Part shown: positions 2,729 through 36,059 of the stretch, one piece after another
Position numbering within the stretch: position 1 is the stretch's first letter
Layout of the letters: the number at the start of each line of letters is the position of its first letter
Assembly (NCBI GenBank): GCA_044892525.1
Contig: CM097888.1
Coordinates: 38,874,001 to 38,938,000 of the forward strand
Origin: Schmidtea polychroa
Lineage: Eukaryota
DNA: 64,000 nt
Direction: 5' to 3'
Made by a program: the position numbers and the translations under genes
Notes under the pieces: generated by a model
What the model was told of the DNA's origin: nothing
Seen by the model: the letters and a program-made list of their open reading frames with translations, nothing else
Database searches by the model: none

Positions 2729-2729
<1 letters not shown>

Positions 2730-11673: not shown

Positions 11674-11825
11674 CTGAAATAGGGGTATGTATAAAATGAT
11701 CAAATAATATTCTAAATAATAATAATTCGTTGTAAATTATATATGCAGCTCCTATTTTGTGATTTATTAAACTTTGACATGTTTGCACTATTTCAAGCTG
11801 CAAAATATAATAAAAGAAAAAAATA

Positions 11826-12032
11826 CCGTATTAGCCCGAATATAACGCGACATTTTTACGTAATATTAATTTTGGTTTAAATTAATTAATTTTTTTGCCA
11901 TGAATATAACCTATGTATTACTTTTAATTACCTAACCAAACGCTTATCTGATTGAATTTCCCTTAATTTTAATTTTTTTATGAGTATTTTTTTTCTAAAA
12001 TTCGGGGTCGCGTTATATTTGGGCTAATACGG
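11826..12032. mobile_element. Tc2/pogo-type (Tc1-mariner superfamily) MITE, 207 bp
   Basis: 26-bp TIR CCGTATTAGCCC(G/A)AATATAACGCGAC with 1 mismatch; TA on both sides. Confidence 0.88.
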
Positions 12033-14075
12033 TAATTAGCTTTTTATTTAGGGAACACACTAATTTATTTATGGGTTGATGATTCTTTTTCACTTATCTG
12101 TGACAAATATTAAAGAAAAAGAAAAGGGACAGAAAACATGGCATTTAGAATTAATATAACGAAAAAAGCATGGACATTTATTGAAAAATGGTCTATTTTA
12201 ATAATTTTCGGAAATACAAAATTTTAATTAAATAAATTATTTTAAAGAAATGTATCAAAATATTTTTTTGAAAAAACTCATTCACCTATATATTGTCTTT
12301 TCTATTAAAAAAATGTTAGAGATTTGTAAGTTTTTATTTTAAATTTATTACTCATTTGTATTCTTTGTAATAAAATTTTAAAAATAGCTAAATATTATAA
12401 AAAATGATCGAGTACAGATTTTTGTTTTTAATACGTAGCAAATCGAAAGTTTTATTTCTAATTTACTCCAATGGCCGGATATTTTTCCTGTTTTCACACA
12501 GTCACACTAAGATGGAATGTTATGACACCTTGACGTCCTTCAAAAATTTTTAACCGTTGTCGAGAAACTTTAAATTTAAATCGAAGTCTGATTTTTTTAC
12601 AACGGATCATCTAAATACATTCGATAATGCATTTCAATAATAATTTTCTTTTCTGCATTTTTAGATCTCTACTTGTTAAAAAGTATAAAATTCAAAAAAC
12701 ATAAATTAAACATTATATAATTATAAAATCAACCATAAAAACATGGTTTCACTATCTTAATTTCACTCAAAACTAAAATTTCAATATGCGTTATCAATCC
12801 TATGAAATATTTATTTTGAATTTATATTAAAATAAGAAAATAACACTAGATTTGACATATCAATATTTTTCAAATTAACCAACTTGTCGTGATCGGATCG
12901 ATCTGAAAATGCATTGTTCTCGACAACGAATCTACTTGCCAATTTTCAGCTCAATTTTATCACGGAAAGTAGGTTAATTTGGCCTCACAAAATTGTCGTA
13001 CCACATACAAACATTAGCGAAGTTAATATAGAGAGTAAAAATAAATTTAACTTTTGTATGCTGTTACGCAGATCATTAAATAAAAATTTGAGTTTTAAAT
13101 TTAAAAAATTTAAAAAATTAATGAAATAGAAATTAATTTTTAAAACTTTTTTAAATAAATATAAATAAATAAATAATTGACTGTTAAAATCTTTACTGAA
13201 AGTTAATGTCGTACTGTTATATACATACAAAGTAAAGAAATTCAAAATAAAATAAGAGGTCTAAGGTGAAATGGATAAAAGGTTTTGCTAAAGACATTGC
13301 AAATATAACTTAATGATATTTTATATTATCTGATTGGCTGAAAATCGATGGCTATATTTTATTAAAGTATTTATAATTTACAATTGAAAATAATTTTTTT
13401 ATAATCGAAAACTTTCTCATTACAAAGATTTTGTAGGAAAACTTTTTTTAACATTTAATTTATTCTGCTAATAAGAAACCATTATTTTCTAGATTANNNN
13501 NNNNNNNNNNNNNNNNNNNNNNNNNNNNNNNNNNNNNNNNNNNNNNNNNNNNNNNNNNNNNNNNNNNNNNNNNNNNNNNNNNNNNNNNNNNNNNNNNNNN
13601 NNNNNNNNNNNNNNNNNNNNNNNNTAGAGAATTTCTAATTTATCTTATTAACGACTTAAACAGACTGAACTTATCTGATTTCACAGAAATAATTAATCAC
13701 AATTAAATTTATAATTAATTTCAGTCAGATTTTCGAACTTGTGGCAAGATCAGAGAAATAGTGAGAAATTTATATTTACGAAAATTTAACTATATTATAT
13801 GAATATTAAATTTTTTAAACCTTTTTCAAAAATGTTTATTTCATTAATTTTGCTTATTGCTGTTAATTTATTAGGATTTCCTTTGTTACCCGATAATCCA
13901 ATGCCGTTTTTTCAGATACATTTTTTTTAAAATTTCTTTAGTTATAAAATCAAGAATTTCTGTAAAGTTTTGTAATAAACTAATGAACATTATGGAAATG
14001 TTAAATAGAATTTAGTTTTCTATTAAATTGACAGGGTATTCCAAGGTATCGATACCAAACTTAGAGAATATAGAT

Positions 14076-14195
14076 TAGCGTTTTTCAACCGCTGGTCCGC
14101 GACCCAATATTAGGCCGCAAAAAAGTAAAATTGGTCTGCGTACACAGAATAGATAGATTTTTGGTCCGCAGTACGTTTTAGGTTGAATAACACTG
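14076..14195. mobile_element. hAT (Charlie-like) MITE, 120 bp
   Basis: Ends TAGCGTTTTTCAACC / CAGTGTTATTCAACC; 8-bp TSD ATATAGAT vs ATTTAGAT (7/8). Confidence 0.8.
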
Positions 14196-17100
14196 ATTTA
14201 GATTGTTTTGAAAATAGAGAAAATAAATGAGAAAAGTATTTTAGTTTTATCTGCTCAGACAATTTTGATATTTCAATTTCTTTAAATAAATGATTTTAGA
14301 TTTTTAGGGATAGACATAAATACAGAGTCAGTCTTTTCCATTGACATTGTATTTATTAAAAACTTGACCATGAATCAATAAAAATATCGATGTTTCGATG
14401 TTATATGTATATATGAATATAATCCTGAAAAGTTTTAACTCTTTAAATATATAAAGTAAAAATTGAGGAAGCTAAAATTCCTTGGGACAAAATATTGATG
14501 CTTTTCTAGCGAATAAATAAATAAATGTATATATATAAAATTTAAAATTTTAAGAGACCTTTAAATCTCAACATGGGTATGATATCTGCATATTATATTA
14601 AGAGTTTATTAATGATATGGGTTTTAGTAATTTTAACGAAATTCTGAAATAAGCAAATAATTTTTTTGAAGTAAGTACTGAAAGAACTTTGAAAATATTT
14701 AAATATGCAAGAAATTTTTAGAATTAATTAATGGCTTGAATGTACAATGATAAGGTGAAAATAATCAGCACCATAAACAAAAGAATATTTCAAAGGAAAC
14801 ATTGTCATCTGTAAATCTTCATCCTCTTACACAGGATTTCCAAACTAGGAATGTTCACACCATTGGTGATGCGAGATAACATTTTAGATTTTTTTATAAC
14901 AATATAAAAAATGTTTAATTAGTATTTTTAAAACATGAACTAAAATCGATGAAAAATGCTTTATGTAGATATATTAGCTCTTAATAATTAAGGGATGCTT
15001 GTCTCCAAAATTTGATGTCATAAGATCAAATCAAAAAATAACCATATTTTTATTTTGGTTTCACGCTTTGAAAAAGAGTCATTTAATTTAAATTGTCTTA
15101 TCAACATGTAATTTTTTATTTGTAATAAATTTTCTTTCTCACATGGCTCCCTTTTTTTATATATTATTAAAAATTGATCATTTAATTTATTTTGATCATC
15201 TTTACTTTTGAAAGTATAAAATAATGATTTCTTGATAGCAGAATTAACTAAATGTTAAACAAGTCAATGATAAAATAAGGCTTTTATTTTACAAACATAT
15301 TTTATTAACTAAATTTTAAATATAAATATTCTTTCACTCGTTCATTTAATCATTAAATTTTAATGAGTCGTTTTAGGCTTTTAAAATTATTTAAAAATTA
15401 AACAAAGCATAATAATTATTAATATAAATTATACTAATTTTACCATATTGTTCTAGACCTTATCAATATTTTGTTTTAATTGATAGAAGTTATATTTTGA
15501 GATTTTAATTTTTATATTCTGTAATTTAAAATTAGTTTATGTAACTTTGATTCCACAAATTCGTTCAGCTTGAATCCTTTTTATTAAATTTACAAGAAAT
15601 CCAGCAATGCTGTTGAGTAATATTATGGTTATAATAGGTTATAATGTGTTGGTGTGGAAGTTCACAGGCAAATCTTTAATAATAAAGTTTAAAGCTTTCT
15701 TTTCAGATTTGTGACATATCCTCCCCGTTATGTAAAATAAATGTAAAATATTGAGTTTATTAAATAATAGTTTAAAACAAACTAAATTATAATAAAAATG
15801 AAATGGGCCACAAAATCTTCTTTGATTGTTAGTTTTTCCTACAGTTGACTTAATTCATGTTTCTCTTAATAAAATATTTATTTGCATTTTAATACGTTCT
15901 TGTACATTTTGCACATCGCATTTCCTTTACCTTTTTATTCTATTTTTCTAATACTCAATTGTATTTTGCCATAATTTGTCTCTATTAACATTCCGGGATT
16001 TTAACCCAATTCTTGAACACTAAATGTTTTATTATTTTATATTTTGAATAATTTTTTGCTAACATGTTTTTTGGTTATTATAGTAAAAAAATAGTTTTCT
16101 AACCTATAGTATTCATATATTCAAAAAAAAGGCAGTGCCAAAAATTCGTGAGTATCAAAAAAATCGATATATTACTAATTTATAGTCTTCAAGCTCTCTT
16201 TTTAATAAATCACAATTGTTAGGATTTAATGAATTAATAAAATATTATGGAATAATTGCCAATGAAATATGTGAATTCCAGCTCCCTAAAATGTTCTCGA
16301 ACTGTGAAGAAAGGTCAAATACTAAAAGCCCTTTAAAAAAGTTTTACATTTAGAGCTAAACTATACCATGTTATTCAGCACAATATAAATAACTCCAAAG
16401 AATAATCTCTTTTGCTACCAAATATTATTTTTTTTCTCGAATAATGATCCTTTTTAATGATCTCTTTTTAACATTATATACTAATTTTTATTAAAAATTT
16501 TTAAAAATTACAAAAAACATAATATTTTTCAAAAATAAAAATTAAAAAATTATTTAGAAATTGTAATTTAATTTAGTTAAAAAATTATTTCACTTTAAAA
16601 TAGAAATGTTTCTTTAATTAGCAGCATAATAGATGATTTGTGGAGATATTGATTATTTTTCTTAGAAAATCAATCAATAATTTTCAATTATTTTGTTTCG
16701 TTGGAACTAAAACAAATCTATCTTAATTTGTAATTCTTTACAACCTGTCAATCAAAAAAATTCAACATCAAAAGAGGTATTGGAAAAATAAAGGAAAAAT
16801 AATTTTATCAAATAAAACTGAAGAAAAACTTAGAAAATGTTTTTATTTAAATTTGGAATTATTAATATATTAATTGATTAAAGAATATTCATTATGAAAT
16901 TAATATTGAGAATTTATTACCGTTTATTTATTGGATTTATCAAAATAACAATGAAAGCTTTGTTTGTTTGAAGAGGCATTGTTTTAAATGATTTCGTAAA
17001 TTCTTTTTTGTTTTAATTTTTTCCATTTTAGTTAACTTTTAAAAAAATTATTTTTATATCTAATATTACGGTAATACTCAATGAACGGGTAGAGGATTAT

Positions 17101-19894
17101 GGAAAAGAAAAGAAGTATGTTCATCTTATTGAATTTAATTGCCAAATAAATGAAAATTCTTAAATATTACCGTTAATTCAAATTTAAAACCAGTTAACAA
17201 TTCTCTTCGACTTTTTTTCCCGGATTTTTCAATTTATTATAAAAACAAATAAAGATTATTTTCCATATAAAATAAAAAACAGATTTGTATTATTACCAAA
17301 ATCATAATCTAATTAATCAAAGTTTGAATTTGTTTAATATTTTGTTTTTAAATTATGTTGGCTTTCTAAAGGTTTTGGTAGGGTTAAAACACTAATCTGG
17401 TTACCCGCGTTTATTAATTAATAACCCAATACCAAAGGTAAATGAAAAACTTTATTTCCACCGAAAAATTTAACAAATTTATGTATAATTTTGACAACTA
17501 ATTTCAATATAAATTTCAATAATTTTACCAAGGACAAACTGTCTTTTATAAACAGACGATGCTTTAGATACTTATCAAACTTTTTCAAAGATAAAATTTT
17601 TTTTTAAATTAACATAAATCGTGTTTGTCAAATTCAGCGGTTCCACTTACCGGATAAAATGATTAATGCAGTCAACAAATTTCTAATTAATTATATTTAC
17701 GTTTTTAGAGCTTTGGAGTCAATGTAGAGGAATTAAATTCGTCTCTTATGTTTCATTTGATAGCTATTTTTATCTCTCCTTCCCTTAAATCAGGATGTCC
17801 AACCTTTTAATGGGCCGTATTGCAAACTTAAATGATTAACTGTGTTGTAAAACTACCATAATATCTTAAGCCTAGACCCTAGAGAATGGTCTCAAAGTCT
17901 TTGAGATTTTAAGGGATAGATGATGTATTTTTTTGAATGTTGCAGCTTTTTTATCATGGACGTGAAGCTCATAGTGCGCTTGCCGGAGTGTGAATTCTTT
18001 AAAAACATCGAATTTCTTTTGTACTATACCCTTAAATTTAATGGGAAAATTACAATACAAAACAAAATCATGTGAATACAGTTTATTTACATTATTACAA
18101 CATTCCAAATATTGTAATCTTTGTATGTTACATCATAAATAGTTTACCTTTTTATTAAAAATCGCAATAAATTTACAGAACAATCCAATATTTTCATTTA
18201 TTTTATAAAAAATTAATTTTGAATAAAATAAATTCCTTTTCATTTAAATTTATTATTTTCAATATTTAAAACAATATAATAAAATATTAAATATAATTAA
18301 ATTGCAATACTGATATAGAATTATAATTCATGAATAACATTTTAAATCTTTTCAATTGTAAAAATTTCTAGTCATTTTTTTTTCCTAATAATTAGTAAAT
18401 AAAAAAATCTGAATTTACTATGGTAACAAATGTATACGTAAACGACAGAAGAAAGCATAATTAAATTTAATAAACTATAATAACTGAATAATTGTTAGTA
18501 AGACAGAAGACTCAAAGAAAAATATTTGTACAAAAAATCGATAATTTCTAGTTTAATTAGTTTTCGCGCAAAAGTCTTAATTTCGTAGAGTTTTAGAATT
18601 CACTTTTTATTGATTATTTATTAGTAATTTTCATTGTTAAATTTCTCTTCTAATTTACAATATTTTAATTTGTTTTAATTGAAAACTTTTGTCAATGACT
18701 CAGAGAACATAAAATGTCGATCATCCGACAGTGATAAATAGATTAATACGCCAATTTATTAGAGAGTGAAATAGGTAAATAAATTCTTTTTTATTAAATG
18801 TTATTCTTCTTTTTCTTTTTTTTCTTTTATTTTCTTTATTCTTCNNNNNNNNNNNNNNNNNNNNNNNNNNNNNNNNNNNNNNNNNNNNNNNNNNNNNNNN
18901 NNNNNNNNNNNNNNNNNNNNNNNNNNNNNNNNNNNNNNNNNNNNNNNNNNNNNNNNNNNNNNNNNNNNNNNNNNNNNNNNNNNNNNNNNNNNNNNNNNNN
19001 NTAAATTGGAAAAAGATTTCAGATTTTGAGTCAATTTTCTAACAGAAAACAATAATCACAAAAGTCTGAGTGAAAAATCCTATTATAAAAAATAAAATTA
19101 AGAATAAAGAATTTGTTTAAACATTACTGATGGGCCAATAGATAACTCGTGTTGTCTGCAAGGCATTCTTAGATGCTATCTGCTGCGATCTATTGGAAAT
19201 ATTTCATCGCTTTAGTTATTGACATCAATCATTATTATATTAATCTTGATATATTAACTCTGAAAGTTTAAGGTAATAAAAAATGTTAGAGAAACTATAT
19301 AAATTAAAAAAGTGTTAGTTTGTTTAAATATTCAGACTTTCTTTTTGTAAATAAGGTATTTGCTTAATTTGTTCTAAATGTGAGAATTACAAAATGGAAA
19401 TTTTGTTCTATAAATGCATACCATAGAAAAGTAATTTCTATGGTTAGAAATGACATAAAGGAATTTAGCTTTGGTCACAAGGAAATTTGAGTGGCTTTTA
19501 AGTGAAAGGATTATCGTGTCAAAAATAAATGCAAGAATTTCAAAGGAAAAATGTGTTAATGAGACAATGGAACATTCTTTATCGGAGTTCTTAGAACTTG
19601 TAGAGAAAAAGAGCATGGTAAAGAATAAATATTGCAATTAGGTTACCAATAAAATTGACAAAATTTGATTAAATTATTGATAAATTAATTTGTGCTAAAT
19701 AATTATTTTTATCTTTTGTTATTGTTTGAAAATTAGACATTTTGTAATTCTTTCTTAAAAATGAATTAATGAAAATTCTTCAATTTATTCATTCTTTTAT
19801 TCACTAGATGTCTCACAACGTGATACGATTTCTAATTATATTTCCATTGAATGGGTATACCCTCCCGACATTTCCATTTGCAATAAAATTATCG

Positions 19895-21131
19895 TTGATC
19901 AAGAAAAATATAAAGCTAAACAAATTGTTTATAAATTAATATAATATTTATAAATTATAGCGACTCAGACAATTAAAAAAACAAAAACATGCTAATAATA
20001 AGTAAATAAATTATTAAAGATGCAAATGCTACAACTGAAAGTTTTGTCTACTTGTTTCCTTATGAAATGAAATGCATCAAATTCAATATACTAATGTAAA
20101 TTATTTGTATAATAAAACTAAATGATTGTTTTAATTATTTAAATTGTTACAATTTTACTGCCATTTTAATATTTTGTTTTAAAATATTATAATACAAAAA
20201 ATAATATTAATACAATTCACATCAATTGAGGATAATTACGTATGGATTTGATTAAATCGACTGTTTGTGGAAATAATATTTGAAACTTGTATTTCTTGTA
20301 TTTTTTCTTAACTTCTAATCATATAGAAAATTCCAAATTAAAAAATTTAAATATAAAATATATTTTCTGCCAATTTAATTAAATTATAGCAATGAAACAA
20401 CCGAAAACAAAATTAAAAAAAAATTATTATATTAATGTACTAATATTTATATAATTGACCAACACATAATTGAAAATGTTTTGTTTTAGAATAAATGTAA
20501 ATTGTATTTTAATGAATTTGATAATCCATTTTTTCAAACATTCTATAACATTTTTTAGTTCTTAATTATTTTGTTTATTTATTATATGTTGTATAATGTA
20601 TATGATGGGTATCATTTTTACTACTCCAATGAACATAAGCAAAATTAGTAAACATTAAATAAATAGCATTTGCATTTACAAGAGACAACCAGTATCACGT
20701 AATGCTTTGAGTCTTGGCTCAAAGGCAACATTTATTTACATAATTTTATGTTCTTCAAAAAAAAATTATAGACGTGGGTTGGTATGTTATTATTGTAGAC
20801 AAAAATAAAAATATAAAATAAAATATATCAATATTTAATAATATACTATATAGGTAAAATATAATTTAGTTATAACTTTTTCGTTTTATTTAATAAAAGA
20901 GCTTGACTATGAATCAGTAAATAAATCGGTATTTTTGATATTCAGGAATTTTCTGCACTGCCTTTTTTAAGTGGATTTGATCAAGATAAATATAAAGCTA
21001 AACAAATAGTTTATAAATTAATTCGCGACTCAAACGATTTAAAATGCAAAAACATGATAATAATAAGTAAATATTATAGACAAATATTAATGCTACAACT
21101 GAGTTTTGTCTATTTGTTTCCTTGTGAAATG
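19895..21131. repeat. Local direct duplication of about 155-175 bp (19895-20069 and 20977-21131)
   Basis: Shared TTGATCAAGA.AAATATAAAGCTAAACAAAT ... ATGCTACAACTGA..GTTTTGTCTA.TTGTTTCCTT.TGAAATG. Confidence 0.85.
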
Positions 21132-23489
21132 GAATATTATGAAACTATATGCCATGTTCTATCATTTCAATAAAAACACTTTTATACTTTTTTGAATTGA
21201 CTTTATACATCCTTTACTAAATTATAAGAATTCTTAGAAAAAGCCTTTCTTGATATAGAACAGTGCTCCGCAACCGGTGTACCGCGAACCCGATCTAGGT
21301 GTGCTGCGGTAAAATTCAATGTATTGGCATTTTAAAATATAAAAATATCTTAAAATTTTTTAATTTATAAATAAATCTAAATTATAATTAATTTTTTTTA
21401 GTCTATTTATATAATTAATTAATTAAGTTTGGGATTTTATTTAACTTTATCATTTTTCGTTAAATTTTCATCTAAATTAAAGATGCATTTAATTTTGTTT
21501 TAATATTTATATTTCATAAAATTTTAAATTTATATTTATTTTTTAGGCAGTTTCACATTTTTAGTTTAAATTTTCACAAATTTTAAGAACTCTATAATAA
21601 ATATTATTATGTTTTTAAACAATCAAACTTTTAAAATTTTAAAATTAAAATCAATATATAATCGTTTTTAATGATTCTTAATGATTATTTTATGATTATT
21701 ATAATAATAGGAAATAAAATATACATTAAAAATGAAATAGAAAATAATTAAAAAATAATTTCAAAAGTATATTGTGTAAATAGCAATTATTTCTGATAAA
21801 TGTAAAATGGATTCTCCTTAATGTAAAAAAATGTAAGAGTAAGAAAATTTAAATTTTGTAGACATGTCTAACTAACAGTATGTGTTAAGCTTTGATTTTA
21901 ATGTTCTTTTTAATTAATTAATAAATTTTTCTATTTTTCTATTTTAGATCAATTTCAAGAAGTGAGTGCTTCATAATAATCTAATTAATTTGGTAGCAGT
22001 GTATTTCTTTAAATATAGAGAAATTTTTACGCGGGAATATAGATCTACCAAGGCCACCTGTTACAAAAAAACCAAAAATATACATATACAAATATACATT
22101 AAGTTGCAATATGGTTTATAACTGTTCAGATTAATAAAATTAATAAAATGTAAATTGCACTATTGGCAGGTAATGCAAAGTACGTTGAGTACCTAGAGAC
22201 ATGTAGTACTCAATATTATTCTAACTTGAAGTGTCTTTATTTGTTTATTATATATGTAATGGATTATTAAAGAAAGAAAAAAGGTCAATGGTGATAAAAA
22301 TAAAAGATTGCATTATCCGTTAAAAGAAATATTAAAATTATAAATAATTTAAAATAACATTAATATTAAATTATAGACAATAAGTGTTTTTATTTATTTT
22401 CAATTAATTAAATATATATTTGAATTGTAAAAAAGACGTTTCATTTAATGGTTAAGATCAACAAAGATTTTTAAAAATTAAATGAATTTTAACGGGAATG
22501 GTTAATGAATATTATTTTGATTTGTTTAATTTAATAAATTTATTGAAAATTTTATTTTTCTCAATCACATTAAAGTAAATGATCATTTTAATTAAATTTC
22601 CAAACGTGACAAAAACCGATGAAATCTACTATATAACTCGAGCATATAGACATATTATTCAATCTTTTTCACAGTTAATTAAATATTTTTAAATATATTT
22701 TTTTCGAAATGAATTAAGATATTTTTCAATATATTCTGGTTAGAAATTTTAATTTATGAAATTCGTTTTTTTTAATAAAAGAAGCATTATTTGAAAACAA
22801 ACATTTCAATTGTAATTCAAAATTTTCAGAAACTTTCAATTCAACATCACAAATACTATCATTCTGCCAACAATATTTATTTCCCAACTTTTCTTCATAT
22901 ACATGAAAATCTCACAAACCGGATGTCATTTTTCACAGATAAAATTTACCTTCGTATTTAATTTATAGCGAAATGGATCATTATTTAACGAATTAGGTTT
23001 ATTAAATATTTAAATATATATCGTTAAAAAAAATAATAAAAAAGAAATAATAAAATAGTTAAAATAATAACAAAAGTAATAATATGGAATTAATTATTAA
23101 AGTACAAAATTAGATATGATTGCAATAAAACAACATATTAAACTCAAATTGTTTGAAAAAATTGGATTTAACTATTTGAACAATAACCTAATTNNNNNNN
23201 NNNNNNNNNNNNNNNNNNNNNNNNNNNNNNNNNNNNNNNNNNNNNNNNNNNNNNNNNNNNNNNNNNNNNNNNNNNNNNNNNNNNNNNNNNNNNNNNNNNN
23301 NNNNNNNNNNNNNNNNNNNNNNNNNNNNNNNNNNNNNNNNNNNNNNNNNNNNNNNNNNNNNNNNNNNNNNNNNNNNNNNNNNNNNNNNNNNNNNNNNNNN
23401 NNNNNNNNNNNNNNNNNNNNNNNNNNNNNNNNNNNNNNNNNNNNNNNNNNNNATTTAATTATAAGATAGCGCCAATCAAACATTCTTTT

Positions 23490-23528
23490 CACAATATATT
23501 TCGACAGTTTTCCTGTCATCATCAGGTG
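23490..23528 (-). ncRNA. Minimal type I hammerhead ribozyme (Penelope pLTR type)
   Basis: Minus strand CAC-CUGAUGA-U-GACAG(GAAAA)CUGUC-GAAA-UAUAUU-GUG. It has an intact core, a perfect 5-bp stem II, a palindromic AUAUAU stem III and a 3-bp stem I CAC/GUG. Predicted cleavage is after AUU (23493/23492). Confidence 0.75.
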
Positions 23529-23789
23529 GGATATAATAACTATGTAAATTAAGGATTTTAAACAAATTTATTAATTATATAAAAACTTTTTTTTTAATAA
23601 AAACATTTAATTATTTTTGAAAATTATAATTAAATTAATATATTATTTTTAAAAATTTTTAAACATTCAAAATTTAATTTAATAATTTAAAAAATTTTAT
23701 AAATTATTTAATTTAACACAAGAATCAATACATAAAATATACAAGAAAATAAATTTTTTAAAAACATTTAAAATACAAGTCTTCACTGC

Positions 23790-24200
23790 ATTCTACACAT
23801 TAAGTTTTGCATTCAATGATTTTATCAACAACGCCTCACAAATCACACGTTCCCAATAATTATCGAAATTTTATAATAAAATTTTAAATCAGACATACCT
23901 ATTTTAATCTTACAGCCCTTATTGTGCTCACTAATATGGGTCAAAGCCTTCGGTCTATAATGCTCTCGAGCTCGAATAAAGAGATGACGGGAAGTCTCTC
24001 CAATGTATGTGGTATTACACCCATTACATGTAAACTGATAAACGAGATCGGAACACAATTCGACCGGAGTTTTTGACTTATTAATGAACATATTGCGTAC
24101 TTTCCATGAAGTTGATACTATCCTATAGTTTAAATTCCCAAACTGCTTTCTTATCTTCTTAATCCTTAAAACCTTCTGAGTATGGCAATACTAACGTAAA
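23790..24200 (-). mobile_element. Penelope-like retroelement relic: RT-EN linker and GIY-YIG endonuclease, frameshifted
   Basis: LVYQFTCNGCNTTYIGETSRHLFIRAREH. An upstream frame reads PYSEGF. A shifted downstream frame reads WERVICEALLIKSLNAKLNV*, a typical PLE endonuclease C-terminus. N-gaps lie nearby on both sides. Confidence 0.85.
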
Positions 24201-26078
24201 TCATCCTTGCTCACACTATTTAATTTATTTGTCTTATCAGTCTCTTTTTCATTAAATACAATTTTTGCAGCAAAAGGCTTAAATTATCACTTTATTGTTT
24301 TAAATAATAAATGCTGCTACAAAGNNNNNNNNNNNNNNNNNNNNNNNNNNNNNNNNNNNNNNNNNNNNNNNNNNNNNNNNNNNNNNNNNNNNNNNNNNNN
24401 NNNNNNNNNNNNNNNNNNNNNNNNNNNNNNNNNNNNNNNNNNNNNNNNNNNNNNNNNNNNNNNNNNNNNNNNNNNNNNNNNNNNNNNNNNNNNNNNNNNN
24501 NNNNNNNNNNNNNNNNNNNNNNNNNNNNNNNNNNNNNNNNNNNNNNNNNNNNNNNNNNNNNNNNNNNNNNNNNNNNNNNNNNNNNNNNNNNNNNNNNNNN
24601 NNNNNNNNNNNNNNNNNNNNNNNNNNNNNNNNNNNNNNNNNNNNNNNNNNNNNNNNNNNNNNNNNNNNNNNNNNNNNNNNNNNNNNNNNNNNNNNNNNNN
24701 NNNNNNNNNNNNNNNNNNNNNNNNNNNNNNNNNCCAGTGTATTAAATTATGTTTATTCTAGTGCCGTCAAAATTTTAATTGAAAAAAAGTTTGATTTCAA
24801 AAGTTCCAACTGCTACAGAAGCAGGAGTTATTAACAGAATTAATAGAAAACAAAAATGCCTAATTTGACAAAATCGTGGAGGATAGAAATTTGCTAATTA
24901 TAATTCATCTGTTTTGTAAGAGAATTGCGAAATTATACTAGCAGAGAAAAGTCAACAGGCAAATTAACAATTAGCGATTCAATAGCGAAATAGCTGATTA
25001 AAATACGGATAAGTAAAATTGTACTTAATAGAAAATTGAATTTTGTTTAAAAATGAATTTTTTTATCATTTTAAACGGCCAAATAAAATTGAATTCGAAA
25101 TATTATCCGAATCGTAATCTGAAATATAATTAATTAATTTATTAAATTCATTATTATTTATATTTTTTTTCGGTTTTCTTAATTTTAATTAAATAAATTA
25201 TTTCAATTAATTAAATGATGTGAATTATATTTGCTGTACTGAGATAGACATATATCTTTTCTATTTATTCTAATGAAAATTTATTTAATTTTAATTCTTT
25301 TTTAAAAATGTAAAGAATTATATGAGAATGAAATGAAATAATGTTTTGTTTATAACTTCCACTATTGTATTTAATTTTTCAAATATTTCAATATTTTCGG
25401 AGCTTGGTTTTTGAATTAACATCATTTTTACATCAACTCGTCTATAATTTTGAAAGAAAAACTAACATTTAGATAAAAGTTCTTTTTTGGCAGTATTCTG
25501 AAATCTGCGTTTATGAAAATATTTTTTGTTTGTTTGATTAAATATTTGATTGGACTTTAGAAAATTTGAGAATTCGAAAAATCATATCACTTACTGAAAT
25601 TTTATAATTGAAATTTTATTTATTTATTGAATTCATATTCTAAATATCAGTAAGTCAATGCAACTTTAATGCAAATAACTGGTTGTTTCAGTCTGGATAG
25701 CGCAAATATCCCGATTTTCAATGAAATCCTAATTGTTTTTGCGTTTATCCGCACTAAATATTAGCTATCAGACTTTCTGTTTTATGGAGGATTTCTTAAT
25801 TCTCGAAAATCAAAAATGTTGAATTTCTCAAAAATAAATTTTCGAAAATTATAAAATAATATTAACATATGAATATTTCCGAAGACAATAATTTATATAA
25901 ACAAATTTTCTTTCAATAAAGACTAAAAAATTAAGCAAATTTACATTATTATTTCTAATATTATAAAATTTAGCATAAGTATGTTCGGAATTGAAATGAA
26001 ATGATCAATGCTGCTTTTATACTGTCGTAGAAAATTCCAGAATTACCTATATAATTGATGCATTTAAACAAAATCATA

Positions 26079-27702
26079 GAAATGTAAAAGTTTCCATAAA
26101 AAAAAGTTTCCAAAAGTTAGTAGACACTATAAAATAGCAATAAAAATATAGTCTTAAAAATATCATATTGTTTCACAAATAGTACCATTTGAAACAAGGA
26201 GAGGATCCTAAGAATTAGTAGAACAAAATTGTTAAAAAAGAAAAAAAATTTCTATCTCATTTCCATACATTTTTTTGCTCACTGTACATGTAAAACTAAT
26301 TTTACTTGAATTTTTGAAAAATATCCATCTTTCAATCGTTTTTTTTGTGACAAGTTAAAACAATTTGCAAATAAAGAAATAATAAAATATAATACTTTCA
26401 AATCGATGCCGGGCTTCCAAAGACTTAATTGAAAAAATACAAACCAATTAATTAATTAATTTAAATTTTGTTAATGATCTATTTTGGAAATAGAAATCTA
26501 ATATCTCTTTATTTAGTGATATCCCAAAAATTGAGAAAGATTGTTGATCAAGCTTGCAGAACCAAAATGGTTAATAATACTGAAATCTGTCCGTTATAGT
26601 CAACAGAGAATTATGTGTCAGTACATCAGAGATGAGAATAATCTAAAATATCATCTAATTTTGAAAGACAATTTATCCTTGGTATCCTTTATATTTTAGT
26701 GTACATACATTTTTAATTGAAGTTTTATATTGAAATCAGTTGTCAAACTTATTCCTGATTTGTGTATTTGTAAGTGAAATGAAATTTGTTATTTCTTTAT
26801 TAATGTATTATTAATAAAAGGACGTATGAAGCCAGATAAGAATAACAACCTTAACCAAACACTTTCATTTACAAATTCCTTTATGTTTTTACCTAGACCA
26901 ATATTTCTGAAAGTTTCTAAATCAAATACGTCATGTATCTGTGTCAAATATTTGATTTCATTGCAATTATTTTTAGGTTTCTTGGTAGCAGAATAAATTC
27001 ACTGTTAAACAAATAAATAATAAGACAATCCTCTGCTGCAAAATATTTATTTAGAAAATTTTTGTTTAAAAAATATTTTTAACCCTTATTAAAGAATTAT
27101 TTGTATTATTATTTGAATTATCTAGTTCTAAATTTTTAATAATTTTCTAGATAATGACTTATCAGTTTCGATTTGTATTTCGTAAAAACATAAAAATATA
27201 AAAAACATAACGATCATCTATAACAGTGGTTCTCAAAGTGTGGGTCACGACCCACGATGGGGTCGTAGAAATTTCAAGAAAACGGAAGATTGTAACTAAA
27301 AAACATTAGGTTGGCTTCAAAATAAAATATTTTTTGAATATAATAAATATTTTATTTTATATTACTATTTTCATCGGCAAAATATTTGCTAGGGTTAATG
27401 AGGTCGCTAAGCAAAAAAGTTTGAGAAGCTCTGATCTATAACATTGTTTCAAAACTGTTTGGATTTTCTTAATTTTTTAACATTGAAAATATATAATTTT
27501 ATTTCATTGAAATGTAAAATGTTTCCATATTATATTTAGTTAGAAATTTAGTATGCTTACATAATAGCAATAAAATATAGTCTTAAAAATATCATATTAT
27601 TTCACAGATAGTACCATTTGAATGCCCACATAAAATTGTGTTGGTATATAAAAGGAGAGGATAGAACAAAATGGTTAAACATGCAACAAATTTCTATCTC
27701 AT
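26079..27702. repeat. Local direct duplication of about 180 bp (26079-26260 and 27509-27702)
   Basis: Shared GAAATGTAAAA.GTTTCCATA ... ATAGCAATAAAA.TATAGTCTTAAAAATATCATATT.TTTCACA.ATAGTACCATTTGAA ... TTTCTATCTCAT. Confidence 0.85.
27224..27433. mobile_element. hAT (Charlie-like) MITE, 210 bp
   Basis: Ends CAGTGGTTCTCAAA / CAGAGCTTCTCAAA; perfect 8-bp TSD ATCTATAA. Confidence 0.9.
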
Positions 27703-28706
27703 GTTACGTGTCTCCCTAAAAATGTTAAAATATCATACATCGTGGCAGTTTAGTACGATATCAAACCTTTTAGTACACACTGAAATGTTTTTTCTATATA
27801 AAAGCCCCATAAAAATATCTATGACATGTTGTATTCAGACTTTTATTAAAATATTTAAAATACAGCACAAGTTTTATGTATAAGACACTATTTTAACAAT
27901 TTAAAATAATTATTTTAATAATTAATGCTTGAATTATTATAATATTATAAATTTTGCGTGACAATAATTTTCTCTTGCTGAAGAAATTTTACCCGACATG
28001 AGTTTGGGGTCTCTATTAAAACGATAATATCATCTTATTTCAAATTCCAGAAATAATTTAAATTTAAATCATACAAATATTTTAAATTAAAAAAAACAAA
28101 TAAACTTTTTTGTGTAATGCTACATAAAACAATAAATGTTCTGTTACATAATCTACATAAGGGAAAATTTAGAAATATTTCCTTAAGTCAGCAAATCCGT
28201 GTTGCAAAGTTAGAGTGCATTTCAGTGATGTCAGAAATGTAAGAGCGATTGAAATATATTCTGGAGAACATTTTTAATTACTTGACAGATGTTAGATTTT
28301 TTACGATATTTATATAGGATTTTCTTTCGTTGAAAATTATTATGAGCTCTACAGATCCAACACTATTCTCTGTTGTTTGCTATGCAAAAATCTCCGTAAA
28401 AATAAAAAAGAAATTATTTTTCTAGTAATATATTATTTCTTTAAATTGAATGTGTGAGTGTAATATGAGATGGAAGAAAATTGGAAGCGATTCTTGGCTT
28501 TGATAGGGAATTGTAGGTAATTATAAATCAACCTTTGTTAGTAGTGTTTTTTATTTATAAATAATGTAATTATATTATTTCGAGTAATAAATTATATTAA
28601 TGAAGAGTAAAATTTTTGCGAGATAATTGATTGATTTTTTTCATTAATCATTCAGATAATTTTATCATTTTATTTAGATTTACGAGATTTAAAGAAACGG
28701 AGAAAA

Positions 28707-28710
<4 letters not shown>

Positions 28711-28794
<84 letters not shown>
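28711..28794. repeat. (TA)42 microsatellite
   Basis: Direct reading. Confidence 0.95.
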
Positions 28795-28796
<2 letters not shown>

Positions 28797-29844
28797 TTTA
28801 GAAATAGTGTTTGTTGTTAANNNNNNNNNNNNNNNNNNNNNNNNNNNNNNNNNNNNNNNNNNNNNNNNNNNNNNNNNNNNNNNNNNNNNNNNNNNNNNNN
28901 NNNNNNNNNNNNNNNNNNNNNNNNNNNNNNNNNNNNNNNNNNNNNNNNNNNNNNNNNNNNNNNNNNNNNNNNNNNNNNNNNNNNNNNNNNNNNNNNNNNN
29001 NNNTTTGTAGATAATGACCTCCCGCAACCAAAACTAGAATTAGTATAAAGTCATGCTGGTTAAAGTACATTGAGAAATATTTAAATAAGATCACTGAAAA
29101 TTTTACTTTTAAAACAACTTTGTTTAAATAAATAAACGCAAAATTAATGTTTGATTCGGATGTAAAACGAAAAAGTGTTCAGTCTTATGTTAGATCTTTA
29201 AGTCAACTTGGACATACTTAGACAATATAGAAAACATTCTTTCGTGTATAAATAAGTTAACTAATTTTAAAAAAAACAATTTCTTTATATAATAATCAGC
29301 TTACTAAAAATGACATTACAATGCTTTGTTATAGCTGTATAGGTTGTCGAGAATTAACATTTAAAAATACGAAAAATTAATTACAAAGCAATTTGAAAAA
29401 AATCAAAATTAAAAAATAATTAATTTAAGTTAATTAAAAATTTGAAAAATTTGAAATTTAATTTAATATGGCTAAGTGGCAAATACAAAGATAATTACGA
29501 ATATTATAATTTTGAATCTATGGGCGTCCCTATGCGTTGTTATATATCAATCATGTCATAAAGGAAATAGAATTCCCGAGCGTAAGTAAAACGTATTTTA
29601 ATTTTAAGGGAATTTAAATAACAAATTAAATTGGCTTGTTTATCTTTTAAATAATTTATTTGATAAAAGTTTCAAGCGAGCATTATTAAACGTAAATTAG
29701 GACGTCTAGCATATTAATAAAAAGGATTGATAGAGTCTCTATTGATTAGAGCAAAATCAGATTGAGACGTACACTTTTAGATGTCTTGTCTGTAGATCAG
29801 ACTGTTAATCATATTGGTGAAATTGCATTGATTGCAATTATTAC

Positions 29845-30363
29845 GGTACTTGTTCATTATCGGGAACCCCAGTAAAAAAAATAATAATTAAACTTTGAAA
29901 ATAACTTGAGTGTGACCAGTACCCTTGTGAGCAATACCCATGGGGGGGGGGGGCAAAATATCTTGTCGAATAAACTCACAGTATACCTTTTGTTTGATAT
30001 ACATATTATAAGGTTTGAAAATTTCGAAGGTTTTTAACCCTTTGAAGGTTATTGACCCACCATAAACCTTCGATGGTCTGACTAAAAATTGCCTCTAAAT
30101 TACCTTTTGTATGAACCATCGTTCAATAAAATCCATTGGCGGGAACTTTTCTAACTTTATTTTCAAATTTTTCAAACATTATAATATGTATATCAAACAA
30201 AAGATATCAAGATATTTTGTCCCCCTATGGGTATTGCTCACAAGTGTACTGGTCACACTCAAGTTATTTTCAAAGTTTAATTATTATTATTTTTTTATTG
30301 GGGGTCCCGATAATGAACAAGTACCTTTTTTATTGCTGGGGGTCCCGATAATGAACAAGTACC
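29845..30363. mobile_element. Long-TIR MITE, Merlin-like, 519 bp
   Basis: About 185-bp inverted arms starting GGTACTTGTTCATTATCGGGA; perfect 8-bp TSD ATTATTAC; terminal about 38 bp tandemly duplicated in the right arm. Confidence 0.8.
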
Positions 30364-32180
30364 ATTATTACTAATTGAGACACTGAACATTTTGTTATTG
30401 ATGTTTTGTCAAAATTTAATGTTGTATTTTATTGTTTTAATATAGAGAATGCGGAATCAGAAATAATTATTTACTTATCAAAACTCTTTAAAAATCCAAC
30501 ATACCGAAATCACAGTGCCACAAATATTTTCCTTCTACAATTGATCTAGTATAGTTGAAAAAGTATATTATTATAAAATAAAAAAGATAAGAATTAATAA
30601 GGAATTGTATGTTTCCAGTAGATAATAATGTCATACCTGAATCACTCTCTGGTAACCCCCCTCACTATTTCATAAATAATAGTAATCGATAAATTTTAAA
30701 TTGTGTAATTACTTATTACTTTAATTATATAATTAATTTATTATTTAATTATTTAAATTCTTTTTAAATATTTTAATTTAATTTGTTATTTACTTTATTT
30801 TATTATTTTATTTAATATAAATTTAATTAATTAATTATTTTATTTAGTAATTTGTATTTTAATAAATTAGTATTTTATTTAATTAATTTTTTTATCACAT
30901 TTATTAATTACGAATATTATTTATATTTTCATTTATTTTTTTTATTTAATTCAATAATCACGTTTTCTTAATTAATTATTCTTATTATTTTATTTATTTA
31001 ATTAAGTAATTTAATTTAATTTATTTATTTATTACATAAATTAATTAATAACATTACTCCAATTTTCATTTATTTTTTTTATTTAATTTAATTATATAAC
31101 CTCACTGTAGATTGAGTACCAAAAGTATGTTTAGTAAAAAAAAAGGTTTAGTGATTTGGATTCAGAAAATGATTCCAAGACTTTTATCTCAGCAATTAGT
31201 TTTTCATAGGATGCTTTGTTTGACTACAAATGGGCTTTGGAAATATTTTCCCTTGTCATAAGTAAAATTATTGAAATCTTTTCCATCTTTTTGTCAAAAA
31301 TCTGTGAGCTTTATTACTTTTCAATAGAAAAATCTATAGTCAAGTTTAGATATTCATATGAAAGAGCAAAGATAGACCTATGGGTAGATTGTTCAGAAAT
31401 TTTTAAGTAAGCTTATTGAATTCAAATAGAACCTTTAAAATATGTAAAAAAAAATTTAACTGCAATGAAAGAAATGCTGAAACTAATTGAAAGCACGTAA
31501 TAATTTAAACTCAGAAATTAAAAAATGCTTCAAATTTTCTGAGCAATTAAATGACGTCAGAAACTTAAGATTAGTAATTAAATTTTGCCGCAAATACTTT
31601 TCAATGTAAGTCATTTGAAACAAAAACAAATTTTTGGATAATTTCAAAATTATACCATTTAAAACAAACAATTTGAAAACTATTTTTAAACGAAAGAAAT
31701 TAACATAACTATTAAATTATTAATTAAATTATTATTAAATTATATATTATTATAAGAACTTTTGATTTTCACCTCTGATTTCTTTTTATTTTCAATTAAC
31801 ATTATATTTATGAAAAATTTGACTTAAAATTGATAAACAAAAACATCGATATCTTTAATGATTCATAGTCAAAAGTAAAAGAAAATGCAAATTTAATTGT
31901 TATTTATGGCACATTTTAATAATTAATAATTATTTATCAATTTTAAATGTAGAATTTGCTTGGATTTTATTAAGTATCTGTACATAAATTCAAAGTTATA
32001 TCAGTTACGAAGAAAGAAGTTATTTTTTTTAAAATACATAGGACACATAAATGATATTAAAATATATTTTTTTAATAATTTTTAGAAAGTCGATAAATAT
32101 TATGTAAATTAGTGAATAACGAAATAATATTTAGATATACTTATTTATTTAAATATACTTATTTATTTAAATATTATTAA

Positions 32181-32260
32181 CCACTTGCACTGGATTGATA
32201 TGCTATGATTGTCAACTGTTATCTGTACGAAATGCCGATCTGAAGTGCATAGAACTTTGT
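32181..32260. mobile_element. Solo left end of a piggyBac-like MITE (same TIR start as the element at 41529)
   Basis: TTAA|CCACTTGCAC; no matching right end found. Confidence 0.45.
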
Positions 32261-32558
32261 GTTGTAAAAGTTGGCAGTTCTATCAACAAGGTATTAATTG
32301 TATACTGTCCGACTTACTTATATAAGTTTACATAACATGTCAACTCGCTACAGATTGCTTTGAACATGTTAATTATTTGACAGCAAAAATGATTAAATTA
32401 AATTATTACATAAATAAGAATACTTCAATATTTTAGGTGATATGGATTTTTAAATTTAAAAATATTTAAAAACGGTCACTTACACACATCAAACATCAAA
32501 TTTATCTAAAATTGCGCATGGCTTTTCTTTAAAATACCTTGTTGTAATGACATCTAGT

Positions 32559-33847
32559 CAGGTCCGGATTAAACCGTCTTAGTGCCCAAGTCACAAACCC
32601 ACATTTGTACCCCTTTTTGCCCGGGACTCTGATCTTTCACTGACCGTGACCGCTGGTATCTTCAATACACCAAACACTACTGAGATGCGTTCTCTATAGT
32701 GGTGGTTGGCGTGTACAGCAATTTCTGACTCACCAATTCATTTACAATTCATGTACTGAATTGCTCATCATTTATGTATTTTGGAAGGTTATTTTAGCAA
32801 TTTTACTAATGGCTTTCAAGTAATTTTTTTAATTTAAAGTAAATTTTAAGACTTGAATTTTAATCCATATGAGATATGAGATCATTATTCAAGTTCTTAA
32901 ATGTTACTTTTAATCAACAGTATAATTATAAATTATTTTTAATTAATTTTCAGGGATTTTTAGGAATTTTATGACATTTATTGTTAAGTATTTTGGAATT
33001 ATTTCGAAAAAATGTGAGTCAGATATATTTTTAATTATAATTAAATAAATCAATCACCAAAATTATGTATTTTTCTAAAAGATTATGCAAAAAAACGCCA
33101 AATATGAATAAAATGATTTTTTTAATTTTTTTTTCTGAACTCATTATGAAGGGCTTCTTTCAGGAAATCAAATCTGGATTGAAAAGACATTGAACCAAAT
33201 TCATCTTCTCTTGATATTTTTATTAAAAATATATTTTTAAAAATTTTCATCCATCTTTTTTTTCTAAAAATTGTCAAAAATAAAGTTATTATAGAAACGT
33301 ATCTCAGCGGTGCATTTCTACGAATCAAAAGTTTGTATGTGTTTTTTAGTTTGTGTTGCGTTTGTGTGCAGTTTTTAATTTTTCTTCCACTTTTCAGATT
33401 TCTATAGTATAACATGTATTTCACTGAACTATAAATGAGAACATCAACGTGAAATCAAAGTATGTATGTTTCTATATTGTAAGATTATGGATTTTTTTGT
33501 TATATTATATAAAACGGTTCTCAGTGGTGTTTGGCGTATTATTGCGTTAGGCTCAGGATTAAGATTAGAGTCAGGGTTAGGGTTAAACACGTATGAATCG
33601 TGAGTCAACATGGTCCGCATTTTAGTCATTTAGGAGTTGTTTAATTTTTCTTGCGCTTAATTTTTAAGCATTTAAGATTGTACCAAACTTGAATGGGAAT
33701 TTTTATTATAATGTATTTCTTCATTTTCATAGCATTTGTTCAATTTTCAGTTGTTTCTGGACCTAAATTTGTTCAAAAAAATTTTTCTTGAGGACTTTTG
33801 GTGCCCAAGGCACGTGTCTTGTTTGCCTAATGGTTAATCCAGACTTT
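32559..33847. mobile_element. Old non-autonomous hAT-like element, about 1.3 kb
   Basis: Ends CAGGTCCGGATTAA / AAAGTCTGGATTAA (3 mismatches in 14); GTGCCCAAG subterminal motif near both ends; TSD only 5/8. Confidence 0.5.
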
Positions 33848-34032
33848 ATTTTAGTGATTAAGAGCAAAATATGAACAGGCAAAGTATTTATAGCCCTGGA
33901 AATGTTATGGTGACAAATTCCACCGATATAGCCGAAAGGGTTAAGGGTTTAGCGTATTTATTACAATTGATTATATCATATCTATTTAATTATTTCAATT
34001 GTTTTAAAACATTGAAAGTTATTTAATTTTAA

Positions 34033-34263
34033 CCCTTTCGCCCCTATTGGGACAATACGTCCCAGAAACTTTCATCATGATCCTACTGGGATATAGGTAG
34101 GGATATAGATATATAATTGGGACTTATTATCCCAGGATTTTCTAGGATATTCAGAAGCGCCACGATTACAAAAATGAGAATATTTCATATTTAGGTCAAT
34201 ATTAACAAGTTCCAATATATAAATTTAGCATAGTGTCATTAGCGGAAAGTCGGTGCGAAAGGG
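34033..34263. mobile_element. piggyBac-like MITE, 231 bp
   Basis: TTAA|CCCTTTCGC ... GCGAAAGGG|TTAA, with internal TGGGA..TCCCAG repeats. A second orphan right end CGAAAGGG|TTAA lies at about 33933-33944. Confidence 0.85.
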
Positions 34264-34561
34264 TTAAAATAAAATTTGTCATTAATAGATTTTCATTTTG
34301 ATAAATAAATAAATCAATAAATCAATAAACCAATAAAAATTATTGAAAAATAATTAGAAAATAAAAAATAATTTGATTAGCAAATGTTTTTTTATTGAAT
34401 GATGTTTTGGATTCGAAATTTATTTAAAAATTTATTTCAATAAATGTAAGACTATAAATGAAAGAACTTTAGGGTATAAAGCTGTCAGAATAGTTTGAAA
34501 TAAATGCACCTTATGTGTAACTCTTTCGAAATTATTCTTATTTTAATAAATAGTCTCTCAC

Positions 34562-36059
34562 CTGTAAAACTATTGTTAATGAGGTCTTTATAAAATTCCA
34601 TTCCATCAATATTATTTAAAGCTTTCACACATTTTTCCAAGACAAAGGGTTTGCATAGTTTGGCTTGAAATCTATCCAATGTATAGGCCACGGCGTATAC
34701 GGCATCATAAACAGACTGGATTTTAGATTCTTGTTTGAAACTCGGCCGTTTACTTGACAAATTGAACATTGTGCACAACTGTTTTCTAGATTTCATGGAA
34801 TTTGACCGTGGAAATCTGTAATCTCTGTAAATTGAATTTCGGTTTTGTTTGTTCAGATCGGTCAGATTTGTGTGAAAGTAATAATAGTTTTCTTTTCCAC
34901 TCGTCATTGACTTAACAGATGATCGAGCGACGCGTATTTTCTGATCAGTGGGAATGCAATCAAACAATTCTTCCCAATATTCATTGAACCATGGATTGTA
35001 GGGATTTTTGTTGTACTTAAGTTGATTGAAATAGATAGTGAAGTCTTTGATTTCCACGGTTTTCACTTCGAATGTAATCGCTCCATTTGCTACATTACTG
35101 TTATTTGTAACGGGCCCATTTTCTTGGCCCCAACCATCACTGGCTATCCATAAGAAATAATTAGAATAATTCATTATTTTCACAGCGTTTAATAAAAGCT
35201 TCGTGTGATCTAATCTAGTAAATAAAACGACTACTCTTGTTTTACTAAATTCCTGATAAAGAGTTTTAACAATTGCTAATAAATCCGAGTGCAAAGGATT
35301 TGGTTTTATCATTTCTTTTGCAGCTATACAAACTCCTAGTTTTTTGCTTTCTTTCCAAAACGCATCAATTCCACTGTCTCCATAATCTCCACTGCTGCGA
35401 ACGGTAGAAACATAGGTCCAATTGAATGAAGCTACCAATTCTGCCATGGCTTTAGCTTGCTGTTGATCCGATGGAAGAGTTCTTGCAAAAATGGGATGAT
35501 CTTTTTTATTACTTAACACAGCGCTTGTTGATGCGTAGCTGATTTGAGGAATATTGAAAAGTCGCAAAAGATTAGCGACTACTATAGAAACTGAAGAGTA
35601 TGAGCCTCCGACGACAGTTCGAATTTTTTGTGTAGCTTTCGTATGCCTCAATACCTCGCTTTTATCTTTACAATAATAATCTGAAGCGTCATTATTGTCA
35701 GACAATGAGGATTTGATAAAATCTAGAGATTGTTGAAGAGCATAAGTGTCTTTTGAGCACGTGTCCAATATTCTAGCACCAATGTTCATATTTGGTAAAA
35801 TATCCGGCCGATTGTTAATTTCCTGAATCGTGAACAACATAGCTTCCAATCGCTGGATTCCTCGATCGGGGTTGATCTTTTTGCAGAGTTCTGTTTCGGA
35901 ATCATGAACTGGAAATAGTCCGCCGAGAATAATGTCCCCATTGTAAATTGCAGACTGATATTTGTTGTCGATTTCAGAAGCGATTAAATTCACAGTGACA
36001 AAAAATGAATAATAAATAACAATAGGTAACTGATTACAGCCAAAAATTCGAAAATACAT
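34562..36059 (-). CDS. mGluR: Metabotropic glutamate receptor, group II-like (class C GPCR), coding exon 1: signal peptide and most of the Venus flytrap domain. Gene model join(36059..34562,11673..11463,9795..9639,<=4067/3750..3356,...)
   Basis: The ORF contains GDIILGGLFPVH, GIQRLEAM, GGSYSSVS, PQISYASTS, ARTLPSDQQQA, GDYGDSG, WIASDGWG, NPWFNEYWE and QESKIQSVYDAVYA. Donor ACAG|GTGAG is at 34562/34561 (phase 1; 1498 nt = 499 codons + 1). The ORF-track tail after FTG is intron read-through. Confidence 0.97.

Follow-up and report, generated by a model that had tools for sequence, protein, structure and literature searches.

Background

Canonical hammerhead ribozymes are universal in canonical Penelope-like elements (PLEs), where their function is unclear (PMC8557442). 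Canonical PLEs are defined by an architecture in which a reverse transcriptase is followed by a GIY-YIG endonuclease (PMC4209133, PMC8557442). The motif described here lies in a stretch of 64,000 nt of DNA from Schmidtea polychroa (the window; contig CM097888.1 of assembly GCA_044892525.1). It resembles the minimal hammerheads of metazoan PLEs (Cervera & de la Pena 2014, PMC4209133) in its type I topology, its full core, an unpaired nucleotide between A9 and position 10.1, a G10.1-C11.1 pair, and a helix III that is short and palindromic and so points to action as a double hammerhead (dimer). Also shared are the position in a repeat 3' of the reverse transcriptase-endonuclease (RT-EN) gene and a high sequence variability with compensatory changes. 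The published hammerheads are mostly solitary and stand next to truncated elements, and here, too, a single copy is visible beside a truncated element. Helix II of the window motif has 5 bp and helix I 3 bp, versus 7-8 bp and 4-5 bp in the families of Schistosoma mansoni; with its 6-nt palindromic helix III the motif is closer to the variant class of Drosophila, rotifers, shrimps and mosquitoes (PMC4209133). In the published experiments a single PLE minimal hammerhead gave no detectable cleavage, and dimeric or trimeric constructs had low activity, mostly at non-physiological Mg2+ (PMC4209133).

Poseidon PAc of Anolis carolinensis likewise carries a hammerhead in its pLTR that is not self-sufficient for cleavage (PMC11167929), and the window motif may be comparable in this respect. 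The PAc motif lies where pLTR and ORF meet, overlapping the start codon of the ORF, and its dependence on the protein of the element was demonstrated. It cleaved only with this protein and was dispensable for insertion in vitro, and no RNA-seq reads started or ended at the presumptive cleavage site (PMC11167929). In the window and its relatives, in contrast, the motif is located roughly 70-270 nt 3' of the endonuclease stop.

Intronic ribozymes of amniotes offer a further comparison. The hammerheads HH9 and HH10 have stable monomeric folds and are conserved at orthologous positions. The HDV-like CPEB3 ribozyme is highly conserved and cleaves as a monomer within minutes (PMC10919898). Like these ribozymes, the window motif is located in sense orientation in a long intron of a neuronal or receptor-type gene, and could in principle break the continuity of the intron during transcription. 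Unlike them, it has a helix III of 1 bp as a monomer, has neither loop-loop contacts nor an Rfam match, and lies in a decaying transposon remnant. According to experiments cited in PMC2995048 and PMC10919898, slow intronic ribozymes leave splicing unaffected and only fast ones abort it.

Animal non-LTR retrozymes (PMC7229834; bioRxiv 10.64898/2026.07.22.740005) also contain type I hammerheads related to those of PLE pLTRs, and many of their copies are monomeric and many intronic. For the hammerhead-bearing retrozyme copies of Xenopus, which are PLE derivatives, the intronic share is about 43%. Retrozymes are non-coding tandem units with canonical hammerheads and circular RNAs. The window motif is instead attached to an endonuclease-coding remnant, and no tandem non-coding unit is visible in the readable sequence.

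Location and host gene

The host gene is mGluR-like (group-II-like). Four exons, all on the minus strand, were located by tblastn with a flatworm mGluR of 913 aa (P0019). The parts that enclose the motif are:

34562..36059, minus strand: mGluR exon 1, coding part, with the ANF_receptor ligand-binding domain (Pfam, E=9.8e-65)
11674..34561, minus strand: intron 1, 22,888 nt, GT at 34561-34560 and AG at 11675-11674 (tblastn, splice-site reading)
11465..11673, minus strand: mGluR exon 2, end of the ligand-binding domain, 3' bound approximate (tblastn, acceptor site)

The codon split across the intron 1 junction restores residues that are found in relatives, and a later exon encodes the 7tm_3 domain (Pfam). 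Homologues of exon 1 are named mGluR2/3; the closest named ones are flatworm mGluR2/3-like proteins with about 49% identity, a likeness that makes a platyhelminth host probable. The hammerhead is in sense orientation, nearly at the midpoint of intron 1; from the predicted cut site it is 11,068 nt to the 5' splice site and 11,818 nt to the 3' one.

Structure of the hammerhead motif

The motif comprises 39 bases. Its parts, given on the minus strand, are:

23490..23528, minus strand: minimal type I hammerhead motif (PLE min-HHR; sequence read, descriptor, family covariance model, covariation)
23526-23528 paired with 23490-23492, minus strand: helix I, 3 bp (sequence read)
23519-23525, minus strand: core C3-A9 (sequence read)
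23518, minus strand: extra U after A9 (sequence read)
23513-23517 paired with 23503-23507, minus strand: helix II, 5 Watson-Crick pairs with a 5-nt loop (sequence read)
23500-23502, minus strand: G12-A14 (sequence read)
23494-23499, minus strand: helix III, a 6-nt palindrome that contains A15.1 and U16.1 (sequence read)
23493, minus strand: H17, a U (sequence read)
between 23493 and 23492, minus strand: predicted scissile bond (sequence read)

The catalytic core is complete, with C3 U4 G5 A6 N7 G8 A9, G12 A13 A14, the A15.1-U16.1 pair and H17 all read directly at 23525-23519, 23502-23499, 23494 and 23493. U 23518 is unpaired between A9 and position 10.1, and G 23517 with C 23503 forms the closing pair G10.1-C11.1. 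Together with the palindromic helix III, the extra nucleotide after A9 and this closing pair make up the three published hallmarks of PLE minimal hammerheads (PMC4209133), all of which are present.

The Penelope-like remnant

The motif is preceded on the same strand by a degraded piece of a PLE, of which the following parts were recognised:

23793..24194, minus strand: relic of a PLE RT-EN gene, reduced to its C-terminal GIY-YIG endonuclease region (search with the 743-aa RT-EN ORF of the related element L006 by tblastn, homologues)
23529..23792, minus strand: spacer from the endonuclease stop to the hammerhead, 3' UTR or pLTR (Tandem Repeats Finder, alignment with the spacers of relatives)
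23621-23716: AT-rich tandem repeats, period about 39, 2.4 copies, with nested shorter periods (Tandem Repeats Finder)
23453..23489, minus strand: pLTR sequence 3' of the hammerhead, running into an N stretch (alignment with relatives)
23194..23452: N stretch directly 3' of the relic, 259 nt
24325..24733: N stretch directly 5' of the relic

A stop-free stretch at 23846-24190 (minus strand) contains the PLE-type endonuclease motif block. Its main open piece of 115 codons showed no premature stop, and the endonuclease-like frame ends with a stop codon at 23795-23793, 264 nt before the motif and on the same strand. When the 743-aa RT-EN ORF of L006 was compared with the window by tblastn, only its last ~136 residues were matched, within 24194-23796 and in more than one frame; no other match was found anywhere in the window. 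No RT-like reading frame was seen at 24734-27800, beyond the upstream N stretch. The remnant gene is thus broken by one 5' truncation, with the whole reverse transcriptase gone, and by two frameshifts, one of which rests on a segment of only 10 residues. A single ORF with reverse transcriptase followed by GIY-YIG, as in an autonomous PLE, is not present, and the copy is a relic. Pfam reported no family at E<=0.01 for the endonuclease piece of the window, so its identity rests on the homologues and on L006. A candidate linker upstream of the endonuclease at 24194-24283 was suggested by likeness by eye, and was dropped when BLASTP gave no alignment.

The spacer of 264 nt is longer than the roughly 70-145 nt of the relatives because of the AT-rich tandem repeats. 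A conserved block that the spacers of relatives have in common was not recognisable in the spacer of the window copy by alignment. The window as a whole has 25% G+C and is interrupted every 3.8 kb or so by an N run (17 in all, 128-409 nt long). Two of these bracket the relic exactly, and therefore neither end of the element is visible.

The original prediction had been made from the letters and the open reading frames of the window. Its reading of the minus strand from 23528 to 23490 was reproduced letter by letter, and an intact-looking minimal type I hammerhead is indeed present. The distance of about 265 bp from the GIY-YIG stop at 23793 on the same strand was measured as 264 nt, and N runs were found at both of the places named as gaps. 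The placement in sense orientation inside a 22.9-kb first intron of mGluR was borne out by the minus-strand exons and the 22,888-nt intron.

Related elements

All copies used for comparison come from other assemblies or sources, none from the same genome. Four homologous proteins of the endonuclease piece (P0001-P0004) were found in public assemblies with 44-56% identity; the block of endonuclease motifs does not vary between them. In L006 there is an ORF of 743 aa that matches RVT_1 (E=2.4e-9) and, below the threshold, GIY-YIG. A hammerhead on the same strand was present in all closer relatives (47-60% identity) with enough downstream sequence, namely L001, L003, L005, L006 and L007, at roughly 70-250 nt after the end of the ORF or match. 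In L002 the hammerhead copy (537-582) is partly deleted and is without helix III, the cleavage site and the 3' strand of helix I. The deletion falls between two short GAAA repeats; it looks like a slippage-type event and would inactivate the motif.

Three further elements outside the training set of the family covariance model were also matched by it. In L122 the match lies about 73 nt after the stop of a 673-aa ORF, in L123 it lies 5' of a full ORF of 775 aa and thus in the upstream repeat, and in L124 a match after the ORF is accompanied by two inverted copies. The hammerheads of L124, on a 225-kb contig of GCA_949826985.1, are:

3536-3581, minus strand: hammerhead
6325-6370, plus strand: hammerhead
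10013-10060, minus strand: hammerhead

A PLE ORF of 727 aa in L124 is flanked by two identical minimal hammerheads of opposite orientation, and the third, which is diverged, follows 3.6 kb further. pLTRs on both sides and inverted truncated copies are arrangements described for PLEs (PMC4209133, PMC8557442), and L122-L124 agree with these.

The more distant elements L009, L011 and L013 (37-46% identity) gave no match to a CUGANGA scan or to the model in more than 350 nt after the ORF, and L125 (35% identity) gave no model match at E<=0.1. L010 and L012 have too little downstream sequence for this comparison, and L008 ends inside the match. The association of endonuclease and hammerhead is thus shown for the closer relatives only. 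A match of 23.5 bits in the coding sequence of L007 and L008 is without helix II and was taken as chance.

In L006 a calmodulin-like EF-hand ORF (about 2540-2807, minus strand) and in L007 a ribosomal-protein-S12e-like ORF (1470-1736, plus strand) were seen near the 3' end of the element, both identified by eye only. These host ORFs limit how far the element can reach: its 3' end should be no more than roughly 120-190 nt beyond the hammerhead.

In the otherwise AT-rich tail 3' of the window hammerhead there is a short box with G+C (TGGC, then G or T) at 23468-23475 (minus strand). The box recurs within about 30 nt after the hammerheads of L001, L002, L005, L006, L007, L122 and L123, and in L005, L122 and L123 its reverse complement follows 20-30 nt later. 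This suggests a conserved hairpin, and by analogy the box may correspond to the stem-loop or 'tail' where reverse transcription of the Anolis element starts (PMC11167929). A possible partner arm in the window copy would fall in the N stretch.

Covariation and motif searches

In a MAFFT alignment of 7 sequences, 97.1% of the cells were paired and 7 of the 11 pairs had changes on both sides, versus 31-58% paired cells in slid controls. In an alignment of 11 distinct sequences, which was fitted to the model and so leans towards it, 97.1% of the cells were paired, 9 of 10 pairs were compensatory and 32 cells had changed on both sides (slid controls 24-55%). Helix III was paired in all cells (100%) of the relatives, its palindromy being kept through changes on both sides, and the column of the extra U was invariant among the aligned relatives. 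Covariation and an association with other Penelope copies, both of which the original prediction had called for, were thus found, in related elements from other sources. With this homology and covariation the motif is placed in the 3' non-coding tail of a PLE, as the proposed assignment to a Penelope-like pLTR had it.

The window was also searched with a full descriptor of our own, which asked for the core with C3-G8 or U3-A8, with or without a bulge; for 4 bp or more in helix II and 2 bp or more in helix I; and, after GAA, for a palindromic helix III with A as its first base, and H17. It gave one match in the whole window on both strands. In 300 dinucleotide-preserving shuffles the mean was 0.05 matches per window in the relaxed form and 0.003 at the observed stringency. 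A loose core-only pattern gave 3 matches versus 0.88 expected, and 3 were reached in 4 of 100 shuffles. The thermodynamic folding of the motif is unremarkable (z = -1.56), a modest score that is expected because the motif is a minimal hammerhead.

Models of the Hammerhead_1 type had been recommended for checking the motif. No hammerhead family of Rfam 15 was found, either in the whole window at the gathering score or in 23453-23700 at E<=10; there is accordingly no match to the canonical type I models (Hammerhead_1 and related), in which the loops of helices I and II have tertiary contacts. The homologous motifs of five related loci were missed by Rfam at E<=10 as well, and the silence therefore reflects the insensitivity of these models to the minimal class, not a defective copy. 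A family covariance model built from six motifs, with the window copy in the training set, scored the motif at 62.8 bits, and the next best hit in the window at 14.4 bits.

When a sequence-only hammerhead pattern was run against IMG/VR, at least 108 viral contigs were matched, with a complementary helix II in 94 of the 108. These matches are dominated by few G+C-rich families with a phage-type look and, by eye, a longer helix III, and were set aside as unrelated to the element of the window.

Folding and search for a partner copy

As a monomer the motif has a helix III of 1 bp with a 4-nt loop, a helix I of 3 bp and no loop-loop contacts. By nearest-neighbour energies, which say little on the tertiary folding of hammerheads, the hammerhead-compatible fold has -7.1 kcal/mol versus -9.3 kcal/mol for the minimum free energy (MFE) fold, which is a different one, and closing helix III in the monomer is costly, raising the value from -7.1 to -1.8 kcal/mol. 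On the same scale, the double hammerhead was put at -16.4 kcal/mol, versus -18.6 kcal/mol for two free monomers and -20.4 kcal/mol for the MFE fold of the dimer. A stable active fold as a monomer, as in functional intronic ribozymes of the HH9/HH10 and CPEB3 type, is thus not predicted by these energies.

No second hammerhead was found in the readable window by the strict descriptor, by a search allowing 3 mismatches or by a filter-free covariance search, in which the best other score was 14.4 bits. Comparison of the relic with the window by blastn gave AT-rich low-complexity matches only.

Interpretation

The motif is very probably the usual minimal hammerhead of the tail of a canonical PLE with a C-terminal endonuclease, located in a dead insertion that is 5'-truncated and frameshifted and that has the sense orientation of the mGluR gene, about halfway along its intron 1. 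It would be transcribed passively, most likely without relevant cleavage and without a role in receptor expression. In an active element the motif would stand in both flanking repeats of a tandem transcript. Two copies could join by their palindromic helices III to give a double hammerhead with swapped domains, or folding could be helped by the element's protein; the RNA would then be cut 3' of H17 and the transcript of the element processed. The double-hammerhead route is taken from the literature and carried over to this PLE family. The window copy, in turn, would be transcribed within the mGluR pre-mRNA and removed with the intron. Cleavage at a relevant rate is most likely absent because the motif is a lone monomer with the short helices I and III described above and no loop-loop contacts. 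The intactness of the motif needs no selection, because at about two indels per ~400 nt of coding remnant a motif of 39 nt mostly escapes damage. An intact motif beside a degraded spacer and ORF is expected by chance, yet it is also what selection would produce.

Two other origins of the motif were weighed. That AT-rich DNA matches the hammerhead core here by chance might be argued from the loose core-only pattern, which is not rare (3 matches versus 0.88 expected, reached by 4 in 100 shuffles), from the modest fold z-score and from the silence of Rfam. The full descriptor, however, is expected just 0.003-0.05 times per window, the motif has the position and strand that a PLE endonuclease remnant would predict for it, and relatives have homologous motifs that show compensatory changes; chance is already refuted, with practically no probability left to it. 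The motif could also be one unit of a tandem array, either of a partial-tandem PLE or of a non-autonomous retrozyme-like element, with the other units in the N stretches next to it, and such an array could form a double hammerhead in cis and release a small linear or circular intron RNA. Insertion as a partial tandem, with a hammerhead in either repeat, is typical of PLEs, the relatives have hammerheads 5' and 3' of their ORFs as well as inverted pairs, and an N stretch starts only 37 nt after the motif. Against such an array, the element ends in relatives within roughly 120-190 nt after the hammerhead, nothing PLE-like was seen beyond either N stretch, and 259 nt is short for a further unit that includes a hammerhead. 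An array is accordingly improbable, though the least so among the alternatives to a solitary PLE hammerhead.

It had also been proposed that the sense hammerhead cleaves the mGluR pre-mRNA in intron 1, by means of a partner copy hidden nearby or supplied in trans; PLE protein from active copies may be added as a further means, and receptor expression would be lowered or tuned by such cleavage. The motif has an intact core and the sense orientation, and the polymerase has about 11.8 kb of intron still to cover once the motif is made, so that a ribozyme would have minutes for cleavage. An influence of intronic ribozymes on splicing has precedents, such as that of CPEB3 (PMC10919898), and a PLE hammerhead can be activated by the protein of its element (PMC11167929). 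On the other side, no partner is visible in the readable window, and the relic is truncated, frameshifted and without a reverse transcriptase. A double hammerhead in trans, with six A-U pairs in helix III and three pairs in helix I, is not energetically favoured. Minimal hammerheads of PLEs are poor cleavers even as dimers (PMC4209133), and splicing stays intact with slow ribozymes (PMC2995048, PMC10919898). The neighbouring sequence of the element is decaying, and such motifs are commonplace in introns. Co-transcriptional cutting of the intron, the one part of the original prediction that did not hold up, is highly unlikely on this balance. An effect of the hammerhead on the mGluR transcript is likewise unsupported and very unlikely. 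Slimmer again are the prospects that a lone sense PLE minimal hammerhead, halfway along a 22.9-kb intron, is switched on in vivo, be it by partner RNA or by PLE protein that live copies elsewhere provide, and cuts the nascent mGluR transcript enough to modulate receptor output; if it were true, transposon-derived minimal hammerheads would be protein-gated switches of host genes.

With the motif taken as the remnant of a PLE tail, the observation and the assignment to PLEs are, judged by the sequence evidence, correct; what is gained for a well-described class is a further copy and a further small family whose covariation is good. Minimal hammerheads in the tails of Penelope-like retroelements are already known in their thousands, and this copy joins them. 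The motif marks a transposon relic that is wholly missed by Rfam-based annotation, and its fixed position 3' of an endonuclease remnant allows such motifs to be distinguished from chance. It would bear on the use of these ribozymes to the element or to the host only if cleavage, or conservation at the intron position, were shown.

Other features of the window

Three further uninterrupted or single-ORF genes were noted outside intron 1:

37739-38797, plus strand: uninterrupted ORF of 352 aa with DDE_3 and HTH domains (Tc1/mariner-type transposase)
46789-48492, minus strand: uninterrupted ORF of 567 aa with zf-BED and hAT dimerisation domains (hAT-family transposase)
61742-63028, minus strand: single-ORF rhodopsin-family GPCR of 428 aa (7tm_1, E=2.7e-49)

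The Tc1/mariner-type ORF is located about 1.7 kb upstream of the mGluR start codon. For the hAT-family ORF, no gene with the exact sequence was on record in a public collection by exact-protein look-up. The rhodopsin-family GPCR lies upstream of the mGluR gene on the same strand and has a long third intracellular loop.
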